A stretch of DNA of 64,000 bases from Corallochytrium limacisporum Hawaii (lineage: Eukaryota > Protista > Pluriformea), in the NCBI GenBank assembly GCA_002811645.1, contig PDIP01000036.1:248001-312000 (forward strand), given 5' to 3'. Positions 20,865 to 60,700 of this stretch are shown piece after piece. The first letter of the stretch is position 1. Each line of letters starts with the position of its first letter. Under the pieces are notes generated by a model. That model saw only the letters and a program-made list of their open reading frames with translations, was not told where the DNA came from and ran no database searches. Both the position numbers and the translations under genes were made by a program.

Positions 20865-22601
20865 ATGCTTTCCCTCGCAGCTCAGCGTGCCAATTCAGCT
20901 CAGCGCACTCTGAGCACAGTGGCGAAGACCGTCGGCTGCTACGCTACAGCAGCGAGCAAGCCTAAACCGGCTGTGCCTGACTTCCACTACCAGCCTCTAT
21001 TGGAGACGACGGGCCCTCATGACGTACCATGGAAGAAGGTCACTAGCGACGGTGTTCAGGTGAAGAACATCGATGGTAAGAAGATCTTGGAGGTCGACGG
21101 TTCCGCCATCACTGCTCTTACCACGGAAGGATTCATTGATATTGCTCATCTTCTCCGTCCGGCCCATTTGGAGTCTCTGGCCAACATCCTGAAGGATCCG
21201 GAGGCTAGCAAGAATGACCGATTCGTAGCCCTGGAGTTGCTCAAAAACGCCAATATTGCTGCTGGTATGGTCCTCCCTGGATGTCAGGACACAGGCACGG
21301 CCATCGTTATGGGCAAAAAGGGACAGTACGTGTGGACCGATGGTCAGGACGAGTCTCATATCTCTCGAGGTGTCTACGAGACCTATACCAAGAAAAACTT
21401 ACGCTACTCTCAGGTTAGCCCGGTGGATATGTTCACTGAGAAGAACACTGGAACTAATTTGCCAGCCCAGATTGATCTCTACGCCACCGCCGGCAACGAG
21501 TACAACTTTCAATTCATCGCCAAGGGCGGCGGCAGTGCCAACAAAACATTCCTGTTCCAACAGACCAAGGCTGTTCTGAACGAGGAAGCCCTCACCAATT
21601 TCCTCTACGAAAAGATCCAGACCCTTGGCACTGCTGCTTGCCCACCCTACCACCTTGCCGTCGTTATTGGTGGTCTCAGTGCTGAACTGAACCTTAAGGC
21701 TGTGAAGATGGCCTCCACTAAGTACCTCGACAACCTGCACACATCTGGTAATGAGTTCGGACGGGCGTTCCGGGATCTCGAATGGGAAGAGCGTATCCAC
21801 AAAATGACTCAAAAGCTTGGCATCGGGGCTCAATTTGGTGGCAAGTACTTCTGCCACGACGTACGAGTGATTCGCTTCCCCCGCCACGGTGCCAGCTGCC
21901 CCGTTGGCATTGGTGTTAGCTGCAGTGCTGACCGTCAGGCACTTGGAAAGATTACTGAGGAGGGAGTCTTCCTTGAACAACTGGAGACTAACCCCTCAAA
22001 GTACCTCCCGGATGTCAGTGAGACTCATCTTGATGAAAATACTGAGGTCGTGCAAATCGATCTGGACCAGCCCATGAGCAGCATTCTCAAGACTCTGAGC
22101 CAGTATCCAGTCGCTACCCGTGTGAGCCTGAGCGGTTCTCTGGTCGTTGCCCGCGATATCGCCCATGCTAAGCTTTTGGAGCGCATGAAGTCGGGCCAAG
22201 GCCTTCCTGACTACATCAAGGACAAGATGATATACTACGCCGGTCCCGCTAAGACCCCTGAAGGATACGCCAGCGGTTCCTTTGGTCCTACCACGGCTGG
22301 TCGTATGGACTCCTACGTCCCAGAGTTCATGAAGGAGGGAGGTTCCATGGTCACTTTGGCAAAGGGTAACCGGAGCCGCGGTGTCACGAAGGCCTGCAAA
22401 GAACACGGTGGTTTCTACCTCGGATCTATTGGTGGCCCTGCTGCCATCCTCGCGCAAAACAATATTAAGAACGTTGAGGTACTGGAGTACCCTGAGCTGG
22501 GCATGGAAGCCATCTGGAGCATTCGTGTGGAGAACTTCCCTGCATTCATTGTTGTTGATGACAAGGGCAATGATTTCTTTGCCAAGTGGCAGGGAGCTTA
22601 A
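20865..22601 (+). CDS. Class I (Fe-S) fumarate hydratase, mitochondrial-type
   Basis: [62 protein letters not shown] and [11 protein letters not shown]-terminal presequence-like segment; strong codon bias. Confidence 0.96.
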
Positions 22602-32925: not shown

Positions 32926-35900
32926 ATGAAAATGGTAGGTCCTGTACCATGCTCGGCAAATTCCAGCATCCCTGGGTATCACCCTATCACAGGATTTTCA
33001 GAGAAGCTGGTGGAATGGTATCGCTCCCCACTTATTGAGTACAGCTTCCATAAACCGTCATGTCCCCGCCACATAGCAAAGACATGGCAAATAGAATACA
33101 GCTCGGTCGTGCCCAGTAGGGGCGATTTCAAATTCAATTTCAGACTGGCACAAGCTGCACTTTTAGCATTTCTTGCCACGTGCAAGTCGTTTGGGACTTC
33201 AGACATTCAGAGATCAAACATAATGAAGATCCAGACCGCCTATGACGACCTCGGAAAGCACCTCGTCGCCTTGTACAACAGTGTTGGGCTGAACGCAGAG
33301 CATGCTGATGGTCGTGTGGAGACAGTGGTCACTTTCTTCTCAAGTGCCCTACGTGAGGCCATAGGCAATGCTTTTGCTTCGGACAGGATAGGTGATTGCG
33401 CCGTATTATTTCTTTACGCGGACATCATCAACTTCATGAACGAATTGATACAGCTGGCCACATGCACGTCTCTGTCAGATTGTTACCGGGCTATGATTCG
33501 GGACATAATGACCTATCTGGAGAAACCGGGACGCGAAGGCAACAATGAAATTTTGTTTCTATGTCTGCATCGCGTCTGTAAGGGCGCTATTTTAATGGAT
33601 CATCTGTCTTGTGAAGACGTGCTCAACTCAATATCGATGCGAAATACAACAAACTTGGCAGATCTTATGTGCTGGTGGGACATCGTCCAAGGCCTGAGCG
33701 AGAGCCTGCCGGCATCGCATGCGCCGAGCATGCCGGAAGGACTACCAATGATGGTGAAGCGAATACTGTCATGCCCCGATACTAGCTGTTGTGAAGACAA
33801 CAGTGAGGTGGCGAATACAATACATCAAATGGTCCGCAAGATAGAAACGGTAGCGATCTGGCTGGATCGACCAATTGCATTGCTGGACGCCTTGCAACGT
33901 GTGGTCCAATGGATCGCAGGTGAGTGCAACAACTCATCTTTGCTCTTACAACTTTGTGAGACCTTCAATTCCTTGCTTTCCAGCGCGAGAGTGAAGGACG
34001 TCTCAGAGATGAAACTACTCTCCACCATGTTTGCACGCACAATCCCTTTTCTAGCAAATCCACCGACAGGGGACAGCTCCATGCTCCATGACATGCTTCG
34101 TGTAAGATTGGAATGTACAGCTTTGTTTGGCAGCTTCCCAAAGTTGTTTCAAAAGTGCAGGATGCTAGTTATTGAATTGTATGATTCCACCACATGGGAT
34201 CTCACTGCGACTCTCTTGTTTTGTCGATCACCGTTTTTGTTCCGAAATCACTGGACACATCCCCGCCTCAAGATTGCAATGTCCGAAATCGATACACTGA
34301 AGATCGATGATCATCTGCTGTTCCTGAAAGAGCACAAGCTCAATGCAGAACGCTGTCTATTGTACATCCATACCATGCCCCTGTTCATCCCCGACCCAAA
34401 CGGCTGTTGCCCAAGGAAAAGTAGCGCTTTCATTCAAAGCTTAGAGACTATCCTTTACGCTTGCGAAAGCTACATGAGAGGCTATTTCAAAGATTCCCGT
34501 GCCCTTGCGGAGAGCTGGAGAAAATGTCGTGCACATGGATGCGAGTTGGACGGTACAAAGACATGCACGCGGGCAAGGTCACATGAAGGCAGAGCAATCT
34601 TTAGCTACCTTAGGAAGAACCTGTACTCTATCTTGCTCAGCCTCATCTTCCCAGGGTTACCGGGGGAGCAGTCCCCCTATTGTGTTCCCGGCTATCAGGG
34701 TCCTGATGTGCCTTTCCGGGCATTTGCTTGCCTTGGCACCCTTTGTCACTGTTGGTGTCCTTCGGAGTTCACGTATTTCTTGGATGATCTCGGTGTCAGA
34801 TCGTCATATGGTCTTCAGCAATCTCATAGGAGGCTGATGTCTGCACTGCGATGGTCTTTTGAAAGCATGCACCTTCAAAGCCTGCTCTCTTGCAACCATG
34901 CCCTCCTCTTCCAGGCATACGAAGTCGCTATGAACCAACGAGCCACTCAGCAGGATCTCAATGGTCTCTACTCCGCTATCTTGGAACACAAATGGTCCGG
35001 CGAACCCGTCAATGTATCCAGTTGGGTAAGGTTCTTGTCCCAAACGCCAAAATCATTTGCAGGCCTTGTGCTTGTGGGATACTTCCGGAAGACGACCTCT
35101 GTTGATGCACCACACCATAGATCCATCGAGAATGCCTTGATTGATATTACCAATGCAGGTGATGAAATTTCGGGGACCACCCTGTGGGTTGATGAACACA
35201 AAGTTTTCACCGCTGCTGACAGTCTCCTTCCACTATCACGCTCAATGAAGTTGTGTGCTACGGACGTCATGTACATGCTTGCTCAAGAACCCCCTTTGGG
35301 GGATACATCGCCTCCATCTGTAGCTCTACTTTCCCTGCTAAGCGTAGCCGATACTACCACGGACGATGATCCGCTGTCAGTGGACAAATGGCCTGGCGGA
35401 CCTGCAAAGGCATGGAAAGGGTTGTCTGCATTTTGTAGATTGCTGTGGAGGTTGAACTATTTTACAGACTTGGTTTATGAGAAGCTTCCCGGCGAGAACA
35501 GTCTGCGCTGGCATCGGGACCGAGGTTTGGATCAACATGGACAGTTACTTTGCCGTCTACATAGGCGCCTCATGCACCTTGTCATTGTCCACTTTCCAGA
35601 GTACGCCACTAAGCAACCCATACTGCCTGACTATGAAGAATGTGCCGTGCTTCTGTTTGCGACAGGATGCATGAGCGATGATTCCAAGTTTTCTGAATTG
35701 AACACAGACTACGTAATTCAACTTCTCTTGGCTGTGTCTAGGGCTGAGGGTTCCCAGATCCTCAATCCAATTCACATGGTCCAAAACAACCGGATAGCCG
35801 TGCCGCGACTGAGGATAAAGGTGTGGGACGAGTGGTGGACAACCGACTCCAAACCGCGAAGGGGTGACTGCGAAATGCGTGGCCCGGAACCGTGCACTAG

Positions 35901-36093
35901 GGAAGAGGCTGAATTTCTTGCCTACAGAACCCGTCGTAGAGGCTGTGAACCACTGCCAGGCCATCTTCCACGGCGCATTGTCATGGCCGCCATTGATCTA
36001 TTTCACCTAGCCAGTGTCAAAGACTTCATTGAACAGGAGTTCATCCGAATCGATCCAGAGTGGAAAAGGAATCTGTCTGACCCACTGACATGA
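32926..36093 (+). CDS. Large uncharacterised protein; start may be ATG 33223 (MKIQTAY, about 956 aa)
   Basis: 3.1-kb uninterrupted ORF, too long to be chance. Leu/Cys/Trp-rich and probably helical; no motif recognised. Confidence 0.75.
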   Translation: MKMVGPVPCSANSSIPGYHPITGFSEKLVEWYRSPLIEYSFHKPSCPRHIAKTWQIEYSSVVPSRGDFKFNFRLAQAALLAFLATCKSFGTSDIQRSNIMKIQTAYDDLGKHLVALYNSVGLNAEHADGRVETVVTFFSSALREAIGNAFASDRIGDCAVLFLYADIINFMNELIQLATCTSLSDCYRAMIRDIMTYLEKPGREGNNEILFLCLHRVCKGAILMDHLSCEDVLNSISMRNTTNLADLMCWWDIVQGLSESLPASHAPSMPEGLPMMVKRILSCPDTSCCEDNSEVANTIHQMVRKIETVAIWLDRPIALLDALQRVVQWIAGECNNSSLLLQLCETFNSLLSSARVKDVSEMKLLSTMFARTIPFLANPPTGDSSMLHDMLRVRLECTALFGSFPKLFQKCRMLVIELYDSTTWDLTATLLFCRSPFLFRNHWTHPRLKIAMSEIDTLKIDDHLLFLKEHKLNAERCLLYIHTMPLFIPDPNGCCPRKSSAFIQSLETILYACESYMRGYFKDSRALAESWRKCRAHGCELDGTKTCTRARSHEGRAIFSYLRKNLYSILLSLIFPGLPGEQSPYCVPGYQGPDVPFRAFACLGTLCHCWCPSEFTYFLDDLGVRSSYGLQQSHRRLMSALRWSFESMHLQSLLSCNHALLFQAYEVAMNQRATQQDLNGLYSAILEHKWSGEPVNVSSWVRFLSQTPKSFAGLVLVGYFRKTTSVDAPHHRSIENALIDITNAGDEISGTTLWVDEHKVFTAADSLLPLSRSMKLCATDVMYMLAQEPPLGDTSPPSVALLSLLSVADTTTDDDPLSVDKWPGGPAKAWKGLSAFCRLLWRLNYFTDLVYEKLPGENSLRWHRDRGLDQHGQLLCRLHRRLMHLVIVHFPEYATKQPILPDYEECAVLLFATGCMSDDSKFSELNTDYVIQLLLAVSRAEGSQILNPIHMVQNNRIAVPRLRIKVWDEWWTTDSKPRRGDCEMRGPEPCTREEAEFLAYRTRRRGCEPLPGHLPRRIVMAAIDLFHLASVKDFIEQEFIRIDPEWKRNLSDPLT

Positions 36094-36802: not shown

Positions 36803-38932
36803 ATGTGGGTTCGTGCTTCAGGTTTGCTAGGTTCCGCTGGGAGGTCCCTGTGGCGGTCGCGGTCCCATTTTGTGGCTACCTTGCCAGCCAGTGCTACTGC
36901 TGCGCTGCTCGGCGGTTCTATCGTTCAAGCACGAAAGGGAGCCACCAAGTTCGGGGGTCTGGACAACTTGATCAGGGCCTACTCCACCGACACAGGGGCT
37001 GACGACAAGAAGGAGGGCGAGAACTCGGAACATGCTGTGACAAACACGGAGAAGGTTACTGGAGACATGGAAAGCCAGGAGTTCCAGGCCGAAACTGCGA
37101 AGCTTTTGGACATTGTCGCTCATAGCCTGTACAGTGAGAAAGAGGTCTTCGTTCGTGAGGTCATTTCCAATGCGAGCGATGCCCTGGAAAAACTGCGCCA
37201 CTTCGAACTCGAGGGTAAAGGCCACGAGGACCCGGACCTGCCTCTAGAAATTCGCATCACCACCGACGAGGAAGCAGGCACTATTACTATCCAGGACACC
37301 GGTATTGGTATGTCCAAGGACGAGCTGATGCGCAATCTTGGTACCATTGCTCACAGCGGCTCCAAAGCCATGGTCAACAAGCTGGAAGAGGCATCTGGGA
37401 ACAGCGAGGGGGACAAACAGCTGCGCATGAACATTATTGGTCAGTTTGGTGTAGGTTTCTATTCTACCTTTATGGTCGCAACTAAAGTCAATGTGTACTC
37501 TAAAAGTGCCGAGCCTGGCTCCAAGGGATACGCCTGGGAGAGTGATGGCCGTGGAAAGTACACCATTGCTGAGGCTGAAGGAGTCCAACGCGGTACAAAG
37601 ATTGTGATCACTTTACGTGATGACGACAAAGAGTATGCGAAGACTGGCCGCGTTGAAGACGTGATCAAAAAGTACTCCAACTTTGTTGGGTTTGGTATCT
37701 ACTTGAACGGACAGAAAGTAAACACTGTGCAGGCGCTCTGGACCAAACGTACTTCCGAGGTTACCACAGATGAGCTGAATGAATTCTACCGCTTTGTTGG
37801 GAAAGCTTGGGATGATCCCCTGTTTACCATGCAATTCATGGCCGATGCCCCCATTGATATCAAGACTCTGCTGTTCTTCCCCACCACCCACACCGAGAAG
37901 TTCGGAATGGGCCGACTCGAGCCCGGGGTCCACCTGTACGCTCGCAAAGTGCTGATCAAGTCTCACATTGACAAGCTTCTGCCGCAGTGGCTGCGCTTTG
38001 TGAAGGGAGTTGTCGACTCTGAAGACATTCCTCTCAATATTAGCCGTGAAATGCTCCAGGACAACCGGCTCGTCCAGAAGATTGGTGATGTGGTTACTGG
38101 CCGCATCCTGAAATTCTTGAACGACAAGGCAAAGTCTGACCCCGAGGACTTCAAGAAATTCTACAACGAATTCCAGCAGTTCCTCAAAGAGGGTGTGCTC
38201 ACTGACATGTCCCACAAACAGGATATTGCATCTCTTTTGCGATTTGAGTCTTCTGCCATGCAAGCTGAGGAGAGTGTTGGTCTCAAGGAGTACATTGAGC
38301 GTATGAAGGAGGATCAGGAGGAGATTTACTACCACCAGGCTGCTTCTCGCGAACTGGCTGAATCTTCTCCATACTTCGAGGTCTTCAAAGACAATGGCTA
38401 CGAAGTGCTCTTCTGCTATGACAACATTGATGACATTGCATTGACCAACCTCGGCGAGTTCTCCGGCAAGAAGATCAAGAGCATCGAGTCCGGTGATGTC
38501 AAGATTGGTGATGATACCGGTAATACCTTGGAAGGCAATGAAGACCTCGTGGAGTACCTCAAGGAGGCCCTCGGCGAGGACCGCGTTAACGAGATCAAGG
38601 CCAGCCAGCGTTTGGTTGACTTCCCGTGCGTCATCGTTGATCACCAGAGCCAGTCCACTCGCCGTATCATGCAGATGATTGACTCCAAGATGGGCAAATG
38701 GCTTGGTCCCCAGACCCTTGAGGTCAACTTCAACCATCCTCTAATCAAGCAACTGAACGAGGTTCGCACTGCGGATGCTGACTTTGCCAAGATCATGGCA
38801 GAACAGCTGTGGGATAATGCCCTCATTGCGGCTGGCCTTCTGGACGACCCCAAGACGATCATTAAGCGTGTGAACACTATCCTGGGTCGCGCTGCCAAGG
38901 TAGCTGGTGCCACGACTGAGGAGTCTAAGTAA
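36803..38932 (+). CDS. TRAP1: Mitochondrial HSP90 (TRAP1/HSP75)
   Basis: EFQAET.KLLDIVAHSLYSEKEVFVRE.ISNASDALEKLR, IIGQFGVGFYS and GVVDSEDIPLNISRE. Presequence present; no C-terminal MEEVD. Confidence 0.97.
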   Translation: MWVRASGLLGSAGRSLWRSRSHFVATLPASATAALLGGSIVQARKGATKFGGLDNLIRAYSTDTGADDKKEGENSEHAVTNTEKVTGDMESQEFQAETAKLLDIVAHSLYSEKEVFVREVISNASDALEKLRHFELEGKGHEDPDLPLEIRITTDEEAGTITIQDTGIGMSKDELMRNLGTIAHSGSKAMVNKLEEASGNSEGDKQLRMNIIGQFGVGFYSTFMVATKVNVYSKSAEPGSKGYAWESDGRGKYTIAEAEGVQRGTKIVITLRDDDKEYAKTGRVEDVIKKYSNFVGFGIYLNGQKVNTVQALWTKRTSEVTTDELNEFYRFVGKAWDDPLFTMQFMADAPIDIKTLLFFPTTHTEKFGMGRLEPGVHLYARKVLIKSHIDKLLPQWLRFVKGVVDSEDIPLNISREMLQDNRLVQKIGDVVTGRILKFLNDKAKSDPEDFKKFYNEFQQFLKEGVLTDMSHKQDIASLLRFESSAMQAEESVGLKEYIERMKEDQEEIYYHQAASRELAESSPYFEVFKDNGYEVLFCYDNIDDIALTNLGEFSGKKIKSIESGDVKIGDDTGNTLEGNEDLVEYLKEALGEDRVNEIKASQRLVDFPCVIVDHQSQSTRRIMQMIDSKMGKWLGPQTLEVNFNHPLIKQLNEVRTADADFAKIMAEQLWDNALIAAGLLDDPKTIIKRVNTILGRAAKVAGATTEESK

Positions 38933-51138: not shown

Positions 51139-51822
51139 TCATCGATTCTTCCGTGGTCGCCGGACTGCTTTCAGCACCTTGAGGTGTTCAGGTCCAGCCC
51201 TACGCTCCACAATGGTGCTGACCTCAAGTTCCTGTGTCGAGAGTTGCTCAGTTAAATCTGCTAAATCGTTTTCTGGTAATGCAATCATGTACAGTGTACC
51301 ACCGTCCGTGAGGAGCATTCCGATGTCCGGCAGGATGCGATCCGTTACCTCACGGCCTTTAACACCCCCGGCCCATGATCGAGCCAAACTTGAGCTGTTG
51401 ATTTCCTCCGTTGAAGTTGGAACGTAGGGTGGATTAAAGAGGATCACATCAGCAAACCCCACGGATGGTGAAAAGCGAAGGGCGCTATGTAAATCTGAGG
51501 TAATAGTGTCGATTGGTATCTTATTAGCTTGTCCTGTTTTGTACGTCGCATTTGTCGCCCTGGGATTTATGTCGATACCTACAAAATGGCACGGTATCTC
51601 GTGTGATGTTTCCTCTATCGCTTTCAAAACGATACCCAGATGAGAAAGTACCACACCGCTCCCGCAGCCGATCTCCATGGCCAATGCCGGTTTCAAATTT
51701 GCTAAGTGTTCCAGGTCTCCTTCGATTGCATCCATGAGAAGAAACGTGTCCTCAGCTGGTTCATATAGATGATTAAAGTCCTCAGAACCCAGGTGCGCCG
51801 TTTTGGGACTTGGAAACTTCAT
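51139..51822 (-). CDS. N6AMT1: eRF1 glutamine methyltransferase N6AMT1/HemK2/Mtq2
   Basis: YEPAEDTFLLMDA, EIGCGSG, DINP, FNPPYVPT, SWAGG..GREV and ERRAG.E.L. Confidence 0.95.
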   Translation of the reverse strand: MKFPSPKTAHLGSEDFNHLYEPAEDTFLLMDAIEGDLEHLANLKPALAMEIGCGSGVVLSHLGIVLKAIEETSHEIPCHFVGIDINPRATNATYKTGQANKIPIDTITSDLHSALRFSPSVGFADVILFNPPYVPTSTEEINSSSLARSWAGGVKGREVTDRILPDIGMLLTDGGTLYMIALPENDLADLTEQLSTQELEVSTIVERRAGPEHLKVLKAVRRPRKNR

Positions 51823-52097
51823 GATGAAACTCTGTCCTCTTGTTTAACGTCTTGATCCTCATTCTTCGCGGCCCTTGGGAAAAAGAAAGGTGCCCATGTG
51901 GAAAGGCTATTCTCTGTTGCTTTTACGCCCCGCAGATTTCCCTCTGTTGACGCCCTTTGGCTCAGTGTATCTACCTCAGTTTCGATATCTTTCAAATGTG
52001 ATATCGTTGTCTGCAATTCCTTCACAATGGCGACGTCAACCTGCAAGTCTCTATCTTGTTCGATGGCCGCATTGATTTCCTCCAAAGTCAGTGGCAT
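51819..52097 (-). CDS. Uncharacterised 92-aa helical protein whose TGA overlaps the N6AMT1 ATG
   Basis: ACC-ATG start just after a GCTAAC...CAG acceptor. Protein-like amphipathic sequence (MPLTLEEINAAIEQDRDLQVDVAIVKELQTTISHLKDIE...). Fills most of the WDR6-N6AMT1 interval. Confidence 0.6.
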   Translation of the reverse strand: MPLTLEEINAAIEQDRDLQVDVAIVKELQTTISHLKDIETEVDTLSQRASTEGNLRGVKATENSLSTWAPFFFPRAAKNEDQDVKQEDRVSS

Positions 52098-52221
52098 GGT
52101 CTGCACGGACCAACTGTTAGCGTCTACTTGTACGATTTAAACCTCACTAACTAACTTTATCGAAATATAAAGCAAATCGAAAGCAAAATTGTTGGGTGTG
52201 GTGGTCCACAGCGGTATCGTC

Positions 52222-55200
52222 TCAACTAGCTGCAGGCGCAAGGGTGATAGAGACATTGCTTCCTCTCCCTCTCCGCAATGTCGCAGGTTCGGTGGGGGCC
52301 CAGGTGCGCAGGCGAAGGAAACACAGTCCTATGCCAACCACACCAACAGTAATATCCTGGGCAATGTCATCTGTGTCTTTTCGAGCACCTTCAGCTTCCT
52401 TTTCCACTGGGACATCAATTGGGACATTAGAAAAGAAATCCATGTCCTGTGGATCGGCCACATGAATGATAGTACTGGCGGTTAGCGAGAAACTCAGGAC
52501 AGTCTCATCGACGGTCCAAATATTGAGTCGTTGGTCGATTGATAAGCTCATGAACATCAAGGGATCTCGCTTGTTCTTGCGACGTGGCAGCCATTTGATG
52601 CATGTCACCATTGAGCTGTGGGCAGCTTCTTCGACAAAGAAATCCACCTTGCGGGCGTCATCCGCGTACACCTCGGTCAAGGCTATGGCATTGTCATCTC
52701 CTCCCGAGGCAACGAGCCACGAGTCTTTGGCATGCTCCACCACTGCGATAGCGTTCACGCCAGACTGATGAGGCCGAAACTTACTACGGGGCGTGCCAGT
52801 GGCCGGATCCATCCGTTGCACTTCACCATTGGTAAGTCCGACCAGAACGATTTCTTCAGGACTTCCTTCAGTTCGCGTGATCCATTGCATACTGAGGATA
52901 CATCGGCCAGCCTTGTATGACCAAATCACATTGTGATGGCGGCTTTCTGCATCTATTTCCACTCTGAATAGGTGCATATTGGAGGATCCGGCCAAGAACA
53001 CCAATGGATTTTGCGGGCTGGTGGTGATGGCCATGTAGCGCGCTTCATCGTTTTGTCCAAGGGAGTCACCCACGGACTTTACCAAATGTTGTGGCAAACC
53101 AGAGCGGAACAAGAATCGGAGGCGCCGGTGCCTTCCCTCCAGAACCTGACCTTCCCAGGAACGAATTTCCTCTTTCGCACCTGCAGAATACATCCAGATC
53201 TGCTGATCCTGCCCAGTCACAGCGAGGGACGTAATTGTGCCCTTGTGACGTTCAAGGATGTGTACGTTCATCGGAGGTTCTCGTCGTGAACGCGGATTGC
53301 GATTCACCGATGCATCCCAGTGATGAACCATGGCGTATCCTGCATCTCCGCCACTGATACCACATAAGGTCGTGTCATCTAGTTTGCGAAGACAGAGAGC
53401 ACGGCTCTCTCGGGTATGAGACGGAGGGAAGTGCCGCTCAATCAAGCGCCAGTGACTCTTTGTATGGTCCAAATTCTGGGCAATGGCAATGTTCAATTTA
53501 GAGTCGCGGATGTATCCAAACCAATACCTGAGTGTTCCAGATTCAGTCTGGTAGTAGCTCGATGTCCAGGATCTGTGATGACCTCCACAGGGAACAGAAA
53601 GCATCAGTTTCTTATCCTGCAAATTGTACAGGTTGAATGATTTGTTGAAGAAACATCCAACGATGACAACAAAATCGTCCCGGATTCCGAGTTGCTTGTT
53701 GGTCCGATCGTGTACAGATGAATTGCCAAGCGGCAAGAGGCATGCGATTAGATTTGCATTTCTTGCCACCTTGGTCATTTTGAATATTTCAATCCTTTCA
53801 ATGACCCACGTAGTCGATTCGTCGGCATTGGTGTTCTCTTTCACTGCAAACAAGCAAATTGCACCGTCCATCATACCACAGCTCAAATAGTGTCCCGAGT
53901 CTGTCACGTAAATGCTTGCAATTCCTCTTTTACTGTGAACGCTCGCAGTGGTCACCGTCGACTCCACAACACCAGTGGTATCGGCAGAGATCTGGAAAGC
54001 CCGCACGAAACCATTGCGCATACCAGTGACAACTAGATTCCTTTCTGCATCAAAAGCTGCAGAGGTAATCATTTCGTCCACAGAGGTCTCCCATTGGAAG
54101 ATCATCCCAGGGACTGTGCTAGTCGGGTTGTTCACATCGCACGTCCACAGTGTGTGTTGGCCTTGTGAATCACATATCAGCAACATTGATGGGGAGAGTG
54201 GCTCCATCACTGAGACATTGGCAATATTCAGCCCCGCGAACTCTTCAATATTAGCAGCCTGATCGATGCGAAGAATTACTCCAGCAAATGTTGCACATAG
54301 AATGCACTGTCCATCTGCTGTCCCTTTGCTTACGAGGCACCGACGCAAGAACTCGCTGTGCGAGGAAATTGCATGGGCCATAAACTCATCAGGGCCATGT
54401 GCCATACTACCCACTGAGATTCGACCGTCATCATAAAATACACATGCAAATGATGAGGAACCTCCAAATGCCTGGATGCGACTCACACTTGCTTTGCTGT
54501 CGTCTATGACTACTTCAATCTCCGGATGACTCTCGTCTATACCGACTGCCGACGCCGTCTGCCATACCTTAATCTCACCATTGTCATGACCTAGAAGTAC
54601 ATCATTTCCGCCTGTATCATTCGTACACTCAGCCGTTGGGATGACTGTACTGGTCCAAATGCTGTTCCCTGCAAGTCCCACCCTCTCCGCCACACGGGTA
54701 ACTTCTTTACTATTGGAGGCATCCCAGAGTATAGCACGGCCGTCTTCGCCAGTCGATAGCAATTCGACAACTGTAGCTGCATGCCACGATACATTCCAAA
54801 CACGTCCATGATGACCGCGAAGCACTGCATACGGAACCAAAGTTTCGTTCTCCGTGATATCTTGGAGATTCCACAACCGTACCGTACGATCATCCGAACC
54901 GGACGCCAGTAGGCTGTGTTGATGAGGATTAAATGACAAAGTAAAGATGGCGCCTTCATGGCCTTTGAGAAACACAGGGGTACTATACTTTCCTTCCTCA
55001 AAACTCCATAGAAAGATTTCCTTGAAGACGGTACCGATAGCAACCGTTGGCTGATCGTCGGGTTGGAATGCCGCCGCGTACAAAATTGAGCAATACTGTC
55101 CTTCATGTGTTACGGAGCTTCCAAAACAGATACTGTCATCTGATACATGCACAGGTACCCGGATCACCTTGTTATGCGCCGTAATGGTGTCCATGATGAT

Positions 55201-55656
55201 AGATCCGTCATATTGGTCTGTCCGCGCCAGTCTGACATCTAGAATACGATCTCCTACTCTGTACGCTTTGTGCTGTGTCACTGTCACTGTGCGTTCGCTC
55301 TTGACGGGCAGAACCACGACCTCCGTTACACATTGACACAGGAGATACTCGGCACGTCCATCATCTCCATGAACTACAAAGCTGCGAATCTTATGGATAC
55401 GCTCGAGGCCATGGATTTGTCGTTCAAGTACCTTGATGCCTGACTTTCCGTCAAAAATCCGAATAAAGGGTCCAATGCCGACGCAAAGAAGTGGACCGAG
55501 AGTGAATCCCTGTCCTGGATCTGTTTCACTGCTGGATATCCAGTGTAAAGCAGTGATAGGCCCAATGAATGCACCATCGAGGGGTTCAACATCGAGATTG
55601 CCCCACGTTGCAACGGGTCGTTTACTTCCTGGTCTCGGCATCTGCGAACCGATCAT
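52222..55656 (-). CDS. WDR6: WD40-repeat protein WDR6/Trm734 (cofactor of tRNA 2'-O-methyltransferase Trm7/FTSJ1)
   Basis: GPITAL, SILYAA, GTVF.EI, GHEGAIF, SGSDDRTVRLW, GH.GRVW, CGG.HRSW, HQSGVNAI, SGGDDNA, AHSS and SIDQRL occur in the WDR6 order. First ATG at 55656. Confidence 0.88.
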   Translation of the reverse strand: MIGSQMPRPGSKRPVATWGNLDVEPLDGAFIGPITALHWISSSETDPGQGFTLGPLLCVGIGPFIRIFDGKSGIKVLERQIHGLERIHKIRSFVVHGDDGRAEYLLCQCVTEVVVLPVKSERTVTVTQHKAYRVGDRILDVRLARTDQYDGSIIMDTITAHNKVIRVPVHVSDDSICFGSSVTHEGQYCSILYAAAFQPDDQPTVAIGTVFKEIFLWSFEEGKYSTPVFLKGHEGAIFTLSFNPHQHSLLASGSDDRTVRLWNLQDITENETLVPYAVLRGHHGRVWNVSWHAATVVELLSTGEDGRAILWDASNSKEVTRVAERVGLAGNSIWTSTVIPTAECTNDTGGNDVLLGHDNGEIKVWQTASAVGIDESHPEIEVVIDDSKASVSRIQAFGGSSSFACVFYDDGRISVGSMAHGPDEFMAHAISSHSEFLRRCLVSKGTADGQCILCATFAGVILRIDQAANIEEFAGLNIANVSVMEPLSPSMLLICDSQGQHTLWTCDVNNPTSTVPGMIFQWETSVDEMITSAAFDAERNLVVTGMRNGFVRAFQISADTTGVVESTVTTASVHSKRGIASIYVTDSGHYLSCGMMDGAICLFAVKENTNADESTTWVIERIEIFKMTKVARNANLIACLLPLGNSSVHDRTNKQLGIRDDFVVIVGCFFNKSFNLYNLQDKKLMLSVPCGGHHRSWTSSYYQTESGTLRYWFGYIRDSKLNIAIAQNLDHTKSHWRLIERHFPPSHTRESRALCLRKLDDTTLCGISGGDAGYAMVHHWDASVNRNPRSRREPPMNVHILERHKGTITSLAVTGQDQQIWMYSAGAKEEIRSWEGQVLEGRHRRLRFLFRSGLPQHLVKSVGDSLGQNDEARYMAITTSPQNPLVFLAGSSNMHLFRVEIDAESRHHNVIWSYKAGRCILSMQWITRTEGSPEEIVLVGLTNGEVQRMDPATGTPRSKFRPHQSGVNAIAVVEHAKDSWLVASGGDDNAIALTEVYADDARKVDFFVEEAAHSSMVTCIKWLPRRKNKRDPLMFMSLSIDQRLNIWTVDETVLSFSLTASTIIHVADPQDMDFFSNVPIDVPVEKEAEGARKDTDDIAQDITVGVVGIGLCFLRLRTWAPTEPATLRRGRGSNVSITLAPAAS

Positions 55657-56312
55657 GGTCCCGTTGAAGCAGCCATATTTTCTCAATCTCTGCTGCTGAT
55701 TTTCCGTCCTCTAGCCCATTGTAAAGTAATTTATCGAAACTTGAGTCGTTCAGGGTGTCGACATCCTGTTGCTTAATACCAGTACTCGTGTGTTAACGAA
55801 GTACGCCATGTGAGACCCGCAATTTACACGAGTCCCTCACTAGTGCTGCCTTCACTATCAAATTCCCCATTGTGATAAGCAGTCTCGTAGCATTCCATTT
55901 TAATCGTTCTAACCACGAAAACGTTTGAAACCTACGGGAGGTGCTCCTCTCTGTGGGTAAGAAAGAGAAAACTTCGGTACATTTAGGCCCGGGCCAGGGC
56001 ATCGCCAGAGACAGGACGTCGGACATACCGGGTTTCGCGCTCGTTGGGGGTTTTCCCATCACCTGCATTTTACGCAATTCGGAGGTGAGGTGATCGTCCT
56101 TTACTCGTTCGGGTCCGACTGTGCCGCGCGGCCCACAGACATTGTAAGTTACCACCGAGACCGCGCCAATGATCGCCTCCAACGAGCCTTTCAAAGGTCT
56201 TGTACGTAAATATTATTGTGCCCCATGTGTTGGTATTAGAGGCAACAAGGTCATGGGTCTCTCACAGAGAAATACTGATCCTGCTACGCTCCCAATCACA
56301 AGTGATTCCCCA
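55657..56312. promoter_or_regulatory. Divergent promoter region of WDR6 and the NuiA-like gene
   Basis: About 650 nt between diverging ATGs, with a central GGCCCGGGCC palindrome at 55986-55995. Confidence 0.55.
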
Positions 56313-56984
56313 ATGCTAAAGGTTTTGCAACGCTTCACCGGGCGGCAAGTACACACGGGTAGTGTCCGACAGATCCGCTTTCGTAGTTACAAGATGAGCG
56401 AGTCGGTGCCGCAGATCATTCAGGAGGCCCAGAAGCCGTCCTTTGTTACAGAGCATGCCGCCAAGGGCCAGAGTCTGTTTACGGGAGGGTTCAAAATGAA
56501 GGTGTATGGAGTTGCCTTTCTTGGGGAAGGTGAGCCCGATACCGCTATTGAGGGAGTAGGTGAAGACTTGTCTGAGCTCAAAGAGCTAGCAGGACCAGCC
56601 AGTGAACTGATTTGGCAGTCAGAGACGGACTATGAGCTTGTGCCCTTTTTTGCAACTAGGAAGAGCAGTGGGCCTTTGACTGCCGAAGACCTGGTGAACG
56701 AGGCAGGGCTGAACACCGCTGTCTGGAATAGCAATAGAGAAGAGGTGCTGCGAATGGGTGATCCAGGGTCGGTCGATGGATTTTTGGTAGATCGCTTGCG
56801 CAGATGGAATGGCAGTGATGCGGATGGTGAAATAGAATGCATTCGTGATTTTGTCTTGTCTAAAAGCGACTGTATGGCAGTATGGTTAGGGAAGGGAATC
56901 TGCAATCCGGCCTTGCTGATGTTTGCAGGCACTGGCAAAAGTGGTCATATCGTCGGCTTCCTTACTGGAGCTGTCGAAACCTGA
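56313..56984 (+). CDS. NuiA-like nuclease inhibitor domain protein with putative mitochondrial presequence
   Basis: LIWQSETDYELVPF and the C-terminal GHIVGFLTGAVET align with Anabaena NuiA (LLFMSESEYPFEVF ... GNLAGISTKVVET, recalled from memory). Arg-rich N-terminus from ATG 56313; second in-frame ATG at 56394. Confidence 0.78.
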   Translation: MLKVLQRFTGRQVHTGSVRQIRFRSYKMSESVPQIIQEAQKPSFVTEHAAKGQSLFTGGFKMKVYGVAFLGEGEPDTAIEGVGEDLSELKELAGPASELIWQSETDYELVPFFATRKSSGPLTAEDLVNEAGLNTAVWNSNREEVLRMGDPGSVDGFLVDRLRRWNGSDADGEIECIRDFVLSKSDCMAVWLGKGICNPALLMFAGTGKSGHIVGFLTGAVET

Positions 56985-57065
56985 ACAGAGCGATATATTT
57001 CACTGTGTATACTACTAGTTTCTATATAAATGCATTTAAGAATTTGCCATGTACTCATTGGCGTG

Positions 57066-57794
57066 TCACCCTGTTGTCGATTTCGACGATGGTGAGAGTC
57101 CTCCGCTTTCCACGTGTTCAATCCATGGATTGATTATTCTTTTCAGAACCCGATCCATTAACCACGCAGTCAGGCCCCAGACGATCTCTGGCCCGCCCGT
57201 CCATCGAGGGACCTTTCCCGATATTCTGTAGGTGTTGTAGGTGACATTCTTGGGGTCCAGCAAATGACTAATGGGAAAAGTAAACGCTTGCTCAACTTCA
57301 TCTGGGTTGAGTTTTAAGGATTTCATGTCCAGGTCACCAAGATAGCCAACCACAGGTGTCACTGATGCTGTCTTGGTAATTTCCCATGCATCATTATCTA
57401 TTCCAAGGATTCTAATGTTCTTTGGATCCCACCCTAGTTCCTCCTCCATTTCCCTAAGTGCAGTGAACGTCAAGTCTTTGTCGGTGTCGTCCATCATGCC
57501 TCCTGGGAAACTAACCTCGCCGGAGTGCTTGTTCAACTTAGCAGACCGTAGTGTAAAGAGCACTGATGGAACACCATTGATCTTGCAGAAAGGTACCAGG
57601 ACTGCAGCCTGACGTTCTAACGTGACCGACTCACGCTTCCGTTCACTAAAAACTTTCTCACAAAACTGGAGGTGGTCCTCGCTAAGCATGGTATCCATGG
57701 CCCGCTGCGTTAGACATCCATGTGCGTACCTGCGTACGAAGAAGGTCCCAGGAGTGATCCTGCCTACGTAGGGTCGAACCAACAGGGGTAACAT
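57066..57794 (-). CDS. NUDT8: Mitochondrial CoA diphosphatase, Nudix NUDT8/NUDT7 family
   Basis: AAVLVPFC..GVPSVLFTLRS.KL.KHSGEVSFPGG, TALREMEEELG, LNPDEV and VWGLTA; presequence-like N-terminus from ATG 57794. Confidence 0.88.
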   Translation of the reverse strand: MLPLLVRPYVGRITPGTFFVRRYAHGCLTQRAMDTMLSEDHLQFCEKVFSERKRESVTLERQAAVLVPFCKINGVPSVLFTLRSAKLNKHSGEVSFPGGMMDDTDKDLTFTALREMEEELGWDPKNIRILGIDNDAWEITKTASVTPVVGYLGDLDMKSLKLNPDEVEQAFTFPISHLLDPKNVTYNTYRISGKVPRWTGGPEIVWGLTAWLMDRVLKRIINPWIEHVESGGLSPSSKSTTG

Positions 57795-60700
57795 GCCTGT
57801 TGTCCGGTAAAGTAGCAACCATTGGTTCCTATGACGTGCCCACGGTCATGTTTCTAGTTAATCACACAGCCCAACCCAAAGAACAAATTTTTCCGTTTGA
57901 GAAGTTCAACATGTTTGAAGTACCTTGTCATTGTGTCATATAGGTTGCCACAAATGCACGAATCCTTGCAGCGTCTCTGACCTTGGGACGCCAACACGAT
58001 ATGTGCAGAATCCCTGCCACTTGTTTCTAAGCCAGTCAGTAGTACCGGCAGCCAGCATGACGACAACGCCCGCTCTTGGAGGGTGATTCTATTCAAATCT
58101 TCCATATCCCGTCGAAGGAGGGTGTCTGGACGACCCGGCCCGCCGATCACTTCGTTCCAATTAGGGGTTTTTTTGGTTTGGTTTTTGTTTGTTGGGGGGA
58201 AGGAGGAGAGGGGATGATGAGCTTGACCGAAGCTCACTGATCGCCTTACAGTTAAGGGAGCTTGCTGAAAGAGAGATGTGGGAGCGGTCCAAAGGGTGCT
58301 ATGAAGAGATCTTTCACCGCCACCACCCAACCTCTCGTGATCGGCTTTAGGATGGCCGAAGGATGTCGATCGCCAACCCAAGCAACTAAGAGGAAAATCT
58401 TAAGCTTCAATTCGTGAGGTATCCATCGTCCTTCGTGGCCTCGACATTGTGAACAATTGTGCGCATCTCATACATGGTGGATACCAGGGATATAGGACAA
58501 GCATGACGCTCTGTGATCCGGTTCGGGACCTCTGAGGATTCTCGAAGTGGACCTGAGGCGCAGGTGGGATCAGATATTGCACTCGAGAACCAAGAAAGCG
58601 GACTCCTTTGTATCACCCCTGCTCTCTAGTGAGCAAAAAGGATCCCCATCCACACCTGCTCGTTTTAGAGGTCCATTTCACACGCGACGGGTGTTGTTTG
58701 ACAGATGCAGCAAATGTACGCGCAACTGCCACAGTGGCTCCACAAGGGATAGTGTGCCCCCGTTCGTGCCGTTGACTTCGACGTACGCGCACCGCCCCCC
58801 GTTCCCCTGCACTTACCATGTGTCCCCAACAACTCCGGAGCTTGACTCCTATTCCACTCCGACCACCAGTGCTTGCAAGACAAGTTGGCCCTCATATCCT
58901 GAGAGCTGGCTGTCCCGCTGGTTTCTTCGTTTTACTCCTCTTTCTGGCAAAGCGAGTTCCCTATGGAGCCACAATGGGATTGTCGCAGCCCGGCGATCAC
59001 GAAACCGTTAGGAGCGCCAGACACGGACAGTCTATGTGTCACATAGGGCGCGCGACAACAAGCAGTGCCCTTAGGGCCGGCCTACTGGACCCGAGGTCTA
59101 GGACTACTTCCATTGGCCGCTTCCACATTCTGTGGAAGGGTGACTAGGGGTGACAAGCTTTCCGTCCGCCTCTTCCACTACGGGTCGGTCAAGAGAACTG
59201 AGCGTTCCACGTCCAACTGCCCCCTTCTCACTCGTGCCCGGTTTCTCGTCGAACCCAAACAGACCGAAGGGAGAGTGAGAAGGAAAAAAACCTTCCACGT
59301 ACGACGTTGCCCGCCTCCACAAAGCCATTGAAAACGGACACCTAGGCTGTGGACGGTGCCATTTTTGGAGGAGGATAGATCGTAAACGGCTTCTGCAGTT
59401 TCTGTTTTGTTCGACAGTATCCAAACAATGGCGAATGTACGAGTAAAGGAGCCAAAGTCAGCGAAAGTAGTGAGGCCATAGCAAGGCACAATTAAGCCAC
59501 GGATGAAGAAAAATCGACTTCGCCCCAAGAAATGGCTGGAGTTGCGAAAGGACCGACACAGGAAGTCCTCACTTCCAGTATAGAATATGGTATCGACGCA
59601 TCCTTGGAGACGAGAAAATGAGCGAACGATCACAATGCACTTGCAAAACGGATGATTAGGCCAACTAACACATCAAAAAGCCGGAGACATCAGCAGGAAC
59701 AAGGGGGGTGGGGTTGAACCTCGAAACCACACACTCATAGTCCAGAACACGCCCAGTGTCACGATAGTCACCATCAGTACTAAATGTACTGCTATCTTCA
59801 CAACCTCTTTCGCCCAGCCCCAAAACCTCAGGCGAACGGTGTGATTTCTTGCTCTCCTCTGAGATATCCATCACGATTCTTGCATTGGTTGCTGAGAGGT
59901 TGCTACTACTGGAGCAGTGGTAAAACTACTTGCCTGGATACCCAATCGATAGTACAGCTACCTTGTTCCGTACGAGTCATGTCAAGTTCACTGTTGCGAT
60001 TTTCATGTATTTAATATTGAATGTACGGTCATATTTCTCAATGTTTATGTGTGCATTCTCGATCCACATGGTGTCAATTGGGATCACCTTGTTGTCTGCG
60101 CTGTACCGCGTGTGTCCTCCAAATGTCGATTCCTCCTGGCCACAACACCATCAGTAATTAATGTGCTAGACTTTTTGGCCCGTGTGTATATTCTCATGGC
60201 CTTGTGGTGAACTGTTCGTGCTTGGGTCCTGTCCCGTTCGCACACTCGTAAAGAGCACCCATTCTCCTATTTTTCTTCTTCATTCCGTGGTTACCAGTCG
60301 TGTTTCCGTATTTAAAGTATGAATTCTGTAGACAGCATCAGCAGATCGACAGTATATGTTTTTGCTTACTTCTGAAACAGCACTCGAAAGACTGATGGAG
60401 ATTGATTGTTATTGATGGCAGTTTACAACGACTATGAGTTGGTGCGGTGGTTTTGCGCAGGGTACGAGAGCAAAATTTTGCGTGGTGAAAAGGGAGTGAG
60501 AAACTGCGCAAGAGTTTCGGGACTATTTCACCACATGGTAAGGACCTCCTTTTCCTAAATGTGTACAATCACAGTACTGAATCAGTGGGTGGAAACTTCG
60601 TCAGGGCGCACGCGGCTCGCATACCTGCGTGTTGGGAAAATCATTCCATTCCTTAGAGTCTCTCCCTCTCCCCTCCCCACACTCCTCAGGCGGGACCCGG

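Follow-up and report, generated by a model that had tools for sequence, protein, structure and literature searches.

NuiA of Anabaena/Nostoc PCC 7120 (PF07924; 2O3B and 1J57) is the inhibitor of the nuclease NucA. In work attributed to Ghosh (2007), Glu24 of NuiA reportedly mimics a phosphate, and Asp75 and Trp76 are said to form a second contact site. The C-terminal Thr of NuiA coordinates the catalytic Mg2+ of NucA (PMC5587815; PMC2790893). For EndoG, a protein inhibitor was found described only for fruit flies, with no later one of the EndoGI type. Drosophila EndoGI (3ISM complex) is mostly nuclear, has been reported only in Drosophila and reaches the metal indirectly, via a bound water. 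Its two-domain HEAT-repeat fold is unrelated to the alpha/beta NuiA fold predicted for the protein described here. Loll et al. (2009) left as a question whether EndoG inhibitors exist beyond Drosophila (PMC2790893). Eukaryotic NuiA-like proteins are represented by the fungal family PF23151 (NuiA_2), for which literature searches yielded no functional paper. Neither a eukaryotic NuiA nor a NuiA-EndoG pair was found reported in the literature, with most subscription journals being outside the search.

We analyzed a window of 64,000 nucleotides from Corallochytrium limacisporum. In this window, the frame 56169-56984 (+) is free of stop codons over 271 codons and has in-frame ATGs at 56169, 56253, 56313 and 56394. 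A first-pass annotation of this DNA had correctly reported the open frame and the ATGs at 56313 and 56394, but had missed the one at 56253. The NuiA-like gene extends from 56313 to 56984 (+) and is a single exon when started at ATG 56313. It codes for 223 aa, consisting of a 27-aa leader, a 59-aa extension whose first residue is the second Met, and a core of 137 aa with an AVET end. The features of the locus are:

52222..55686 (-): divergent neighbor, gene for a eukaryotic WD40 repeat protein
56169..56312 (+): in-frame stretch ahead of the gene, containing two ATGs (56169, 56253) and the putative intron 56202-56302
56313..56393 (+): leader (aa 1-27) that resembles a presequence; it contains 5 Arg and 2 Lys, lacks acidic residues and has an R-3-type motif at R24
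56394..56570 (+): second ATG, with A at -3, and the 59-aa extension that is lacking in bacterial NuiA
56571..56984 (+): NuiA core, aa 87-223, and stop codon
56622..56624 (+): E104, equivalent of NuiA Glu24, invariant in alignment A3; Glu in 49/52 bacterial rows
56979..56984 (+): T223 and TGA, so that the chain ends in a free Thr that corresponds to Thr135 of NuiA, with Thr in 50/52 bacterial rows
57066..57818 (-): convergent neighbor, eukaryotic Nudix hydrolase with a presequence-like start at ATG 57794

The WD40 neighbor (52222..55686) is presumably WDR6/Trm734-like. The NuiA-like gene is single copy in the genome (24.1 Mb, 286 contigs), and its GC (0.52) and GC3 (0.54) match those of host genes. 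Contamination was considered as the source of the gene. It is ruled out by the eukaryotic genes on both flanks, by the host-like GC and GC3, by RNA-type contigs in two samples, of which one shows strain differences, and by a relative in the sister genus Syssomonas. The NuiA-like gene (56313-56984) is real and transcribed.

Two public runs, which are probably RNA, gave contigs covering 56330-57869 (X1) and 56300-57003 (X2); contigs of this kind cannot show transcript starts. Both contig sets are empty for 55709-56299 and for the stretch past the Nudix start. X2 includes ATG 56313, and X1 begins 3' of this codon, at 56330. The X2 run differs from the window at a few sites and is thus probably from another strain; within the NuiA-like gene, the differences are G149D in the core (G>A at 56758) and one silent change. 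The stop codons of the NuiA-like gene and the convergent Nudix gene are only 81 nt apart (56984-57066). X1 spans both genes, which suggests that their 3' ends overlap.

The base at -3 is C for ATG 56313, which is a weak context, and A for ATG 56394; a purine is found at this position in 15 of the 17 other long ORFs of the window. The EukProt protein on record has 196 aa and starts at ATG 56394. It is plausible that two protein forms arise through leaky scanning or alternative starts. If the precursor is cleaved in the area of residue 26, the matured form and the form from ATG 56394 would be nearly identical. The upstream stretch (56169-56312) has no similarity to the N-terminus of the Syssomonas homolog and has a GC3 of 0.40, compared to 0.54 for the gene. 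Its part 56169-56299 is without contig coverage in the two RNA-type runs, where contigs begin at 56300 at the earliest. This stretch is probably a promoter or 5' leader rather than coding. ATG 56253 has a strong context (G at -3 and G at +4), and the RNA contigs stop short of it. If transcribed, a start at this codon would add 20 residues, including acidic ones, which could mask the presequence. The first-pass annotation had also proposed a leader intron (56202-56302) that reduces the ATG at 56169 to an 11-codon uORF. This intron lacks support: the pattern occurs 8 times in the window with 8.4 expected by chance, none of the RNA-type contigs has the splice joint, and a gene which starts at 56313 does not need it.

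In the Pfam HMM check, the query is a near miss: the PF07924 gathering cut-off is 22.1 bits, and the full 223-aa protein scores 20.2 bits, its core alone 21.7 bits. The Syssomonas relative (P0003) clears the cut-off with 26.8-28.6 bits. An HMM based on bacteria only (100 bacterial NuiA sequences) scores the query with 18.3 bits, compared to a maximum of 9.2 among 2000 shuffles, and the Syssomonas protein with 26.4 bits (shuffle maximum 6.5). When a profile of both proteins was compared to the PDB, only the NuiA chains 1J57 and 2O3B matched, with a weak E-value of 0.03-0.05. Identity to bacterial NuiA is only 13-27%. An AlphaFold2 model of the core reached a pLDDT of 83.8 with a 54-row, mostly bacterial NuiA alignment, by which the model is biased. 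Foldseek with this model returned 2O3B_B first (E-value 7.9e-7, TM 0.66/0.73), with 1J57 also a top match, and the top matches in the ESM Atlas are NuiA clusters (TM 0.68-0.72). The full-length model from a two-sequence alignment has a pLDDT of 45. On these results, NuiA homology of the Corallochytrium protein holds, and the core is predicted to take the NuiA alpha/beta fold. The NuiA identity proposed in the first-pass annotation is thus supported by the bacteria-only HMM, the PDB profile match and the predicted fold.

Further searches were negative within their scope. Neither protein matches the PF23151 profile (cut-off 27 bits), and the 59-aa extension has no Pfam match. Word-index protein searches returned no more eukaryotic relatives; because these are restricted to lengths of 0.55-1.75 times the query and require shared 5-residue words, such blanks are no proof of absence. 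Nothing was found when genome, metagenome and viral contigs were scanned with the pluriformean sequences, nor by tblastn against plasmids, and no entry of a viral fold library matched at E <= 0.001. A protein of 1781 aa (P0002) was rejected as a relative, the match being spurious and caused by bacterial Ig-like repeats.

A phmmer search over 1.84 billion representatives revealed one true relative, P0003 (234 aa, 27% identical, E-value 7.7e-7). It is an uncharacterized protein of Syssomonas multiformis in EukProt (EP00128). Contamination of the Syssomonas data set is on record (PMC13345962). The Syssomonas protein shares with the query a leader, a second Met, the extension, an SET-x-Y motif and a terminal VVET (AVET in the query); it differs by its lack of a Trp76 equivalent and in being only 27% identical. 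On this sequence evidence, it is the probable ortholog. In a 40-row tree without fungal rows, the two pluriformean proteins form one branch with a long stem (support 99/98), the query has a branch length of 2.0, and no donor lineage is resolved. If P0003 is a genuine Syssomonas protein, the gene arose before the two genera diverged, and a recent transfer is excluded. The pluriformean lineage may have gained it by an old transfer or inherited it from an ancestral opisthokont. Horizontal acquisition, which the first-pass annotation had inferred, is not supported as a fact, with no donor in the tree and a gene that predates this divergence.

The ESM Atlas also contains eukaryotic NuiA-like clusters, which are 95-100% eukaryotic, mostly from Ascomycota, and carry PF23151. 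By their features, these are the Atlas clusters nearest to the query. The PF23151 model has about 36 positions ahead of the part matched by bacterial NuiA. The fungal family was compared at the level of the PF23151 profile and the Atlas clusters.

Compared to Anabaena NuiA, the query has the fold in common and shares the SE-x-x-Y motif, with the Glu24 equivalent, and the terminal V-E-T. The motif correspondences had been recognized correctly: WQSETDY aligns with FMSESEY of Anabaena NuiA, and the PLTAEDL motif and terminal AVET are present. In this alignment, E104 corresponds to Glu24 and T223 to Thr135, so that the claim that both equivalents are retained stands. Both are also kept in Syssomonas. 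The core is acidic in both cases (net charge -15 in the query, -12 in NuiA); the catalytic part of the host EndoG has a charge of +6. Unlike NuiA, the query is encoded by a eukaryotic nuclear gene, has the 27-aa leader and the 59-aa extension, and has no linked nuclease gene. Also, the Asp75 site is not conserved, and only 17-27% of the residues are identical. The Asp75/Trp76 site is R164/W165 in the query and N plus a gap in Syssomonas, in a loop with uncertain alignment; among the bacterial rows, D or E is found in 47/52 and W in 43/52. As far as this poorly aligned loop can be read, R164/W165 may fit a partner other than cyanobacterial NucA. At NuiA position 131, the usual K is replaced by G in both pluriformean proteins.

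The leader is Arg-rich, acid-free and amphipathic, with an MPP-type (R-3) motif and no membrane anchor. Its hydrophobic moment is 0.66, and the highest hydropathy over 17 residues is 0.98. Only 8 of 8204 internal 27-mers from the long ORFs of the window resemble it in composition (about 0.1%). Applied to the 17 other long ORFs, the composition test selects the Nudix hydrolase, a ribosomal S10 protein of 351 aa and an Hsp90, which we infer to be NUDT8-, uS10m- and TRAP1-like mitochondrial proteins, respectively. The Syssomonas leader has 35 aa, is acid-free before residue 34 and is followed by a Met. Both leaders have an R-3-type motif at R24, and there is no significant sequence similarity between them. 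The 59-aa extension, however, is homologous to Syssomonas residues 36-97 (the score was reached in 3/3000 shuffles). Dissimilar leaders with a shared motif, ahead of homologous extensions, are the pattern expected of a presequence. By these properties, the 27-aa leader resembles a mitochondrial matrix-type presequence. The Arg-rich, acid-free leader and the extra residues behind it (given as about 55; now 59) were thus described adequately in the first-pass annotation, and the Syssomonas protein has the same architecture.

No NucA/EndoG-like gene is present in the 64-kb window, as had been noted before. A six-frame search, which can miss split genes, detected exactly one PF01223 gene in the host genome. 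It is of the EndoG type and is located on another contig (L002:1360-2172). The protein has 270 aa, an intact DRGH motif, E-values of 1e-71 to CPS-6 and 1e-44 to EXOG, and is 36% identical to NucA over 172 aa. A hydrophobic, membrane-anchor-like N-terminal segment begins at residue 10, as in EXOG and Nuc1, which are associated with the inner membrane (PMC2275078). In the same six-frame search, with its limits for split genes, neither an EXOG gene nor a PF14040 gene was found, so that EXOG, which had been suggested as a second target, drops out. The genome has one HNH (PF01844) gene (L126:1162-1797). The encoded protein has 211 aa, an acidic N-terminus and no presequence. In Caenorhabditis elegans, EndoG that enters the matrix destroys mtDNA (PMC5137453).

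In the first-pass annotation, nuiA was stated to lie normally beside its nuclease. This applies to mostly cyanobacterial loci, where nuiA is located within 2.5 kb of nucA in 62/68 cases, but not to Bacteroidota, where a nuclease is found within 1.5 kb in 2/15 loci. The lack of a linked nuclease is thus less informative than had been implied. A PF01223 nuclease is encoded elsewhere in 13/13 Bacteroidota genomes with unlinked nuiA, which are related genomes and not independent. In a sample of this phylum, PF01223 was detected in 32/121 genomes by a loose first look that can miss genes. This suggests that a NuiA without a linked nuclease gene still has its nuclease partner in the same genome, and favors the host EndoG over foreign nucleases as the target. 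A few other observations were made on bacterial NuiA. Some Bacteroidota NuiA domains terminate open frames of 286-352 aa (L078, L080, L084, L086), and a HIT/DcpS_C domain is fused to NuiA in one ESM Atlas cluster. Cyanobacteria also have NuiA-like proteins with two domains in tandem, and pentapeptide repeats occur in some of them (L108-L120, P0004-P0013); in the loci L108-L120, the last domain mostly ends with W-T or W-S, not E-T, and there is no nucA within 1.5 kb. A Nostoc-like nucA-nuiA pair occurs in a MAG titled uncultured Acetobacteraceae. The title looks wrong, since the genome collection places this MAG among the cyanobacteria.

We give an even chance to the reading that the protein is a NuiA-type inhibitor of the host EndoG, which is sent to the matrix and probably also has a cytosolic form from ATG 56394. 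A nuclear pluriformean gene would thus encode a competitive inhibitor with NuiA fold that acts on the cell's own EndoG/Nuc1. The product from ATG 56313 would be a precursor, which would enter the matrix and be processed in the vicinity of R24-S-Y. With its weak context, the first ATG may allow leaky scanning, or alternative transcript starts may be used, each yielding a second, cytosolic form. The C-terminal Thr would bind the catalytic Mg2+ of EndoG, and E104 would take the place of the scissile phosphate. In either compartment, EndoG that was mis-sorted or that escaped the intermembrane space would be blocked, and mtDNA, mtRNA and cytosolic nucleic acids would thereby be protected. Such an arrangement would echo that of cyanobacteria, where the nuclease is exported and the inhibitor stays on the DNA side of the membrane. 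Homology and predicted fold, E104 and T223, the acidic core, a leader that is conserved in kind, and the single EndoG favor this reading. Several points speak against it. The second contact site is not conserved, identity to bacterial NuiA is low (13-27%) and the query branch is long (2.0). The confident model owes its quality to a mostly bacterial alignment, while the model from two sequences is uninformative at a pLDDT of 45. Most eukaryotes have EndoG without a detectable NuiA, only two sequences are at hand with one from a contaminated data set (PMC13345962), and one of the two RNA contigs (X1) begins past ATG 56313.

The loss of the second contact site, together with fast divergence and a conserved 59-aa extension that is absent from bacterial NuiA, would also fit a repurposed immunity scaffold, in which the NuiA fold binds a mitochondrial partner that is not a nuclease. 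There is a precedent in the SUKH and SuFu domains, which come from bacterial immunity and became adaptors in eukaryotes (PMC3113570). Both species, however, retain E104 and an exact free C-terminal Thr despite an identity of 27%, and these are the positions needed to reach the metal in the active site of a nuclease. We consider such a repurposed scaffold unlikely. A specificity site that differs from NuiA might alternatively point to another His-Me finger nuclease as the target, be it a mitochondrial intron/homing HNH enzyme, the 211-aa HNH protein or a viral nuclease. The single HNH gene provides a candidate, but the acidic N-terminus of its product, which lacks a presequence, and the absence of a PF14040 gene from the search results do not fit. 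Moreover, characterized NuiA acts on the NucA/DRGH family, of which EndoG is the sole member detected in the nuclear genome. The chance of such a target is small.

Two further readings build on the leaderless form. Defense against foreign NucA-type nucleases from bacterial prey, competitors or symbionts would mainly use the cytosolic form, and the recorded protein is the 196-aa form without leader. Syssomonas is a predator (PMC13345962), and bacterial toxin systems include NucA-type nucleases (PMC3113570). That both species have a matrix-type leader does not sit well with this task, which makes defense a weaker option than the host EndoG; the gene is also single copy without expansion, and unlinked bacterial nuiA accompanies a nuclease of the same genome. 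We regard defense as distinctly improbable. It might also be that only the 196-aa form is made, with the leader being untranslated, and that it guards against EndoG in the cytosol or nucleus like Drosophila EndoGI. The stronger context of ATG 56394, the EukProt annotation and the start of X1 at 56330 are in line with this, while a leader of this composition would seldom arise by chance (about 0.1%) and is found again in Syssomonas, where the motif has the same position, and X2 covers ATG 56313. A protein that is made exclusively in this form is highly improbable.

The Corallochytrium gene is a concrete candidate for an EndoG inhibitor: inhibitor and EndoG would each come from a single gene, and inhibition would depend on two residues. 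If the preferred reading, inhibition of the host EndoG, is true, a bacterial nuclease-immunity fold has kept its original job and now performs it on a mitochondrial nuclease. This would also suggest a function for the uncharacterized fungal NuiA-like family, and the protein might serve as a tool to express or block EndoG-type enzymes. It is tempting to speculate that opisthokonts have an ancient, so far overlooked class of EndoG/Nuc1 inhibitors with NuiA fold, which would include the dual-targeted pluriformean protein and hundreds of uncharacterized fungal PF23151 proteins, but we consider this extension doubtful. If true, the bacterial arrangement of exported nuclease and internal inhibitor would have been rebuilt across the inner mitochondrial membrane.

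Other genes of the window were noted in passing. The stretch 20865-22601 codes for a class I-type fumarase (PF05681/PF05683), which has no acidic residues at its N-terminus. ORFs of 1055 and 374 aa (32926-36093 and 37613-38737) have no Pfam match at an E-value of 0.001. In the region 51139-52106, the ATG of a methyltransferase ORF (51139-51822, -) overlaps the stop codon of an upstream ORF of 95 aa.
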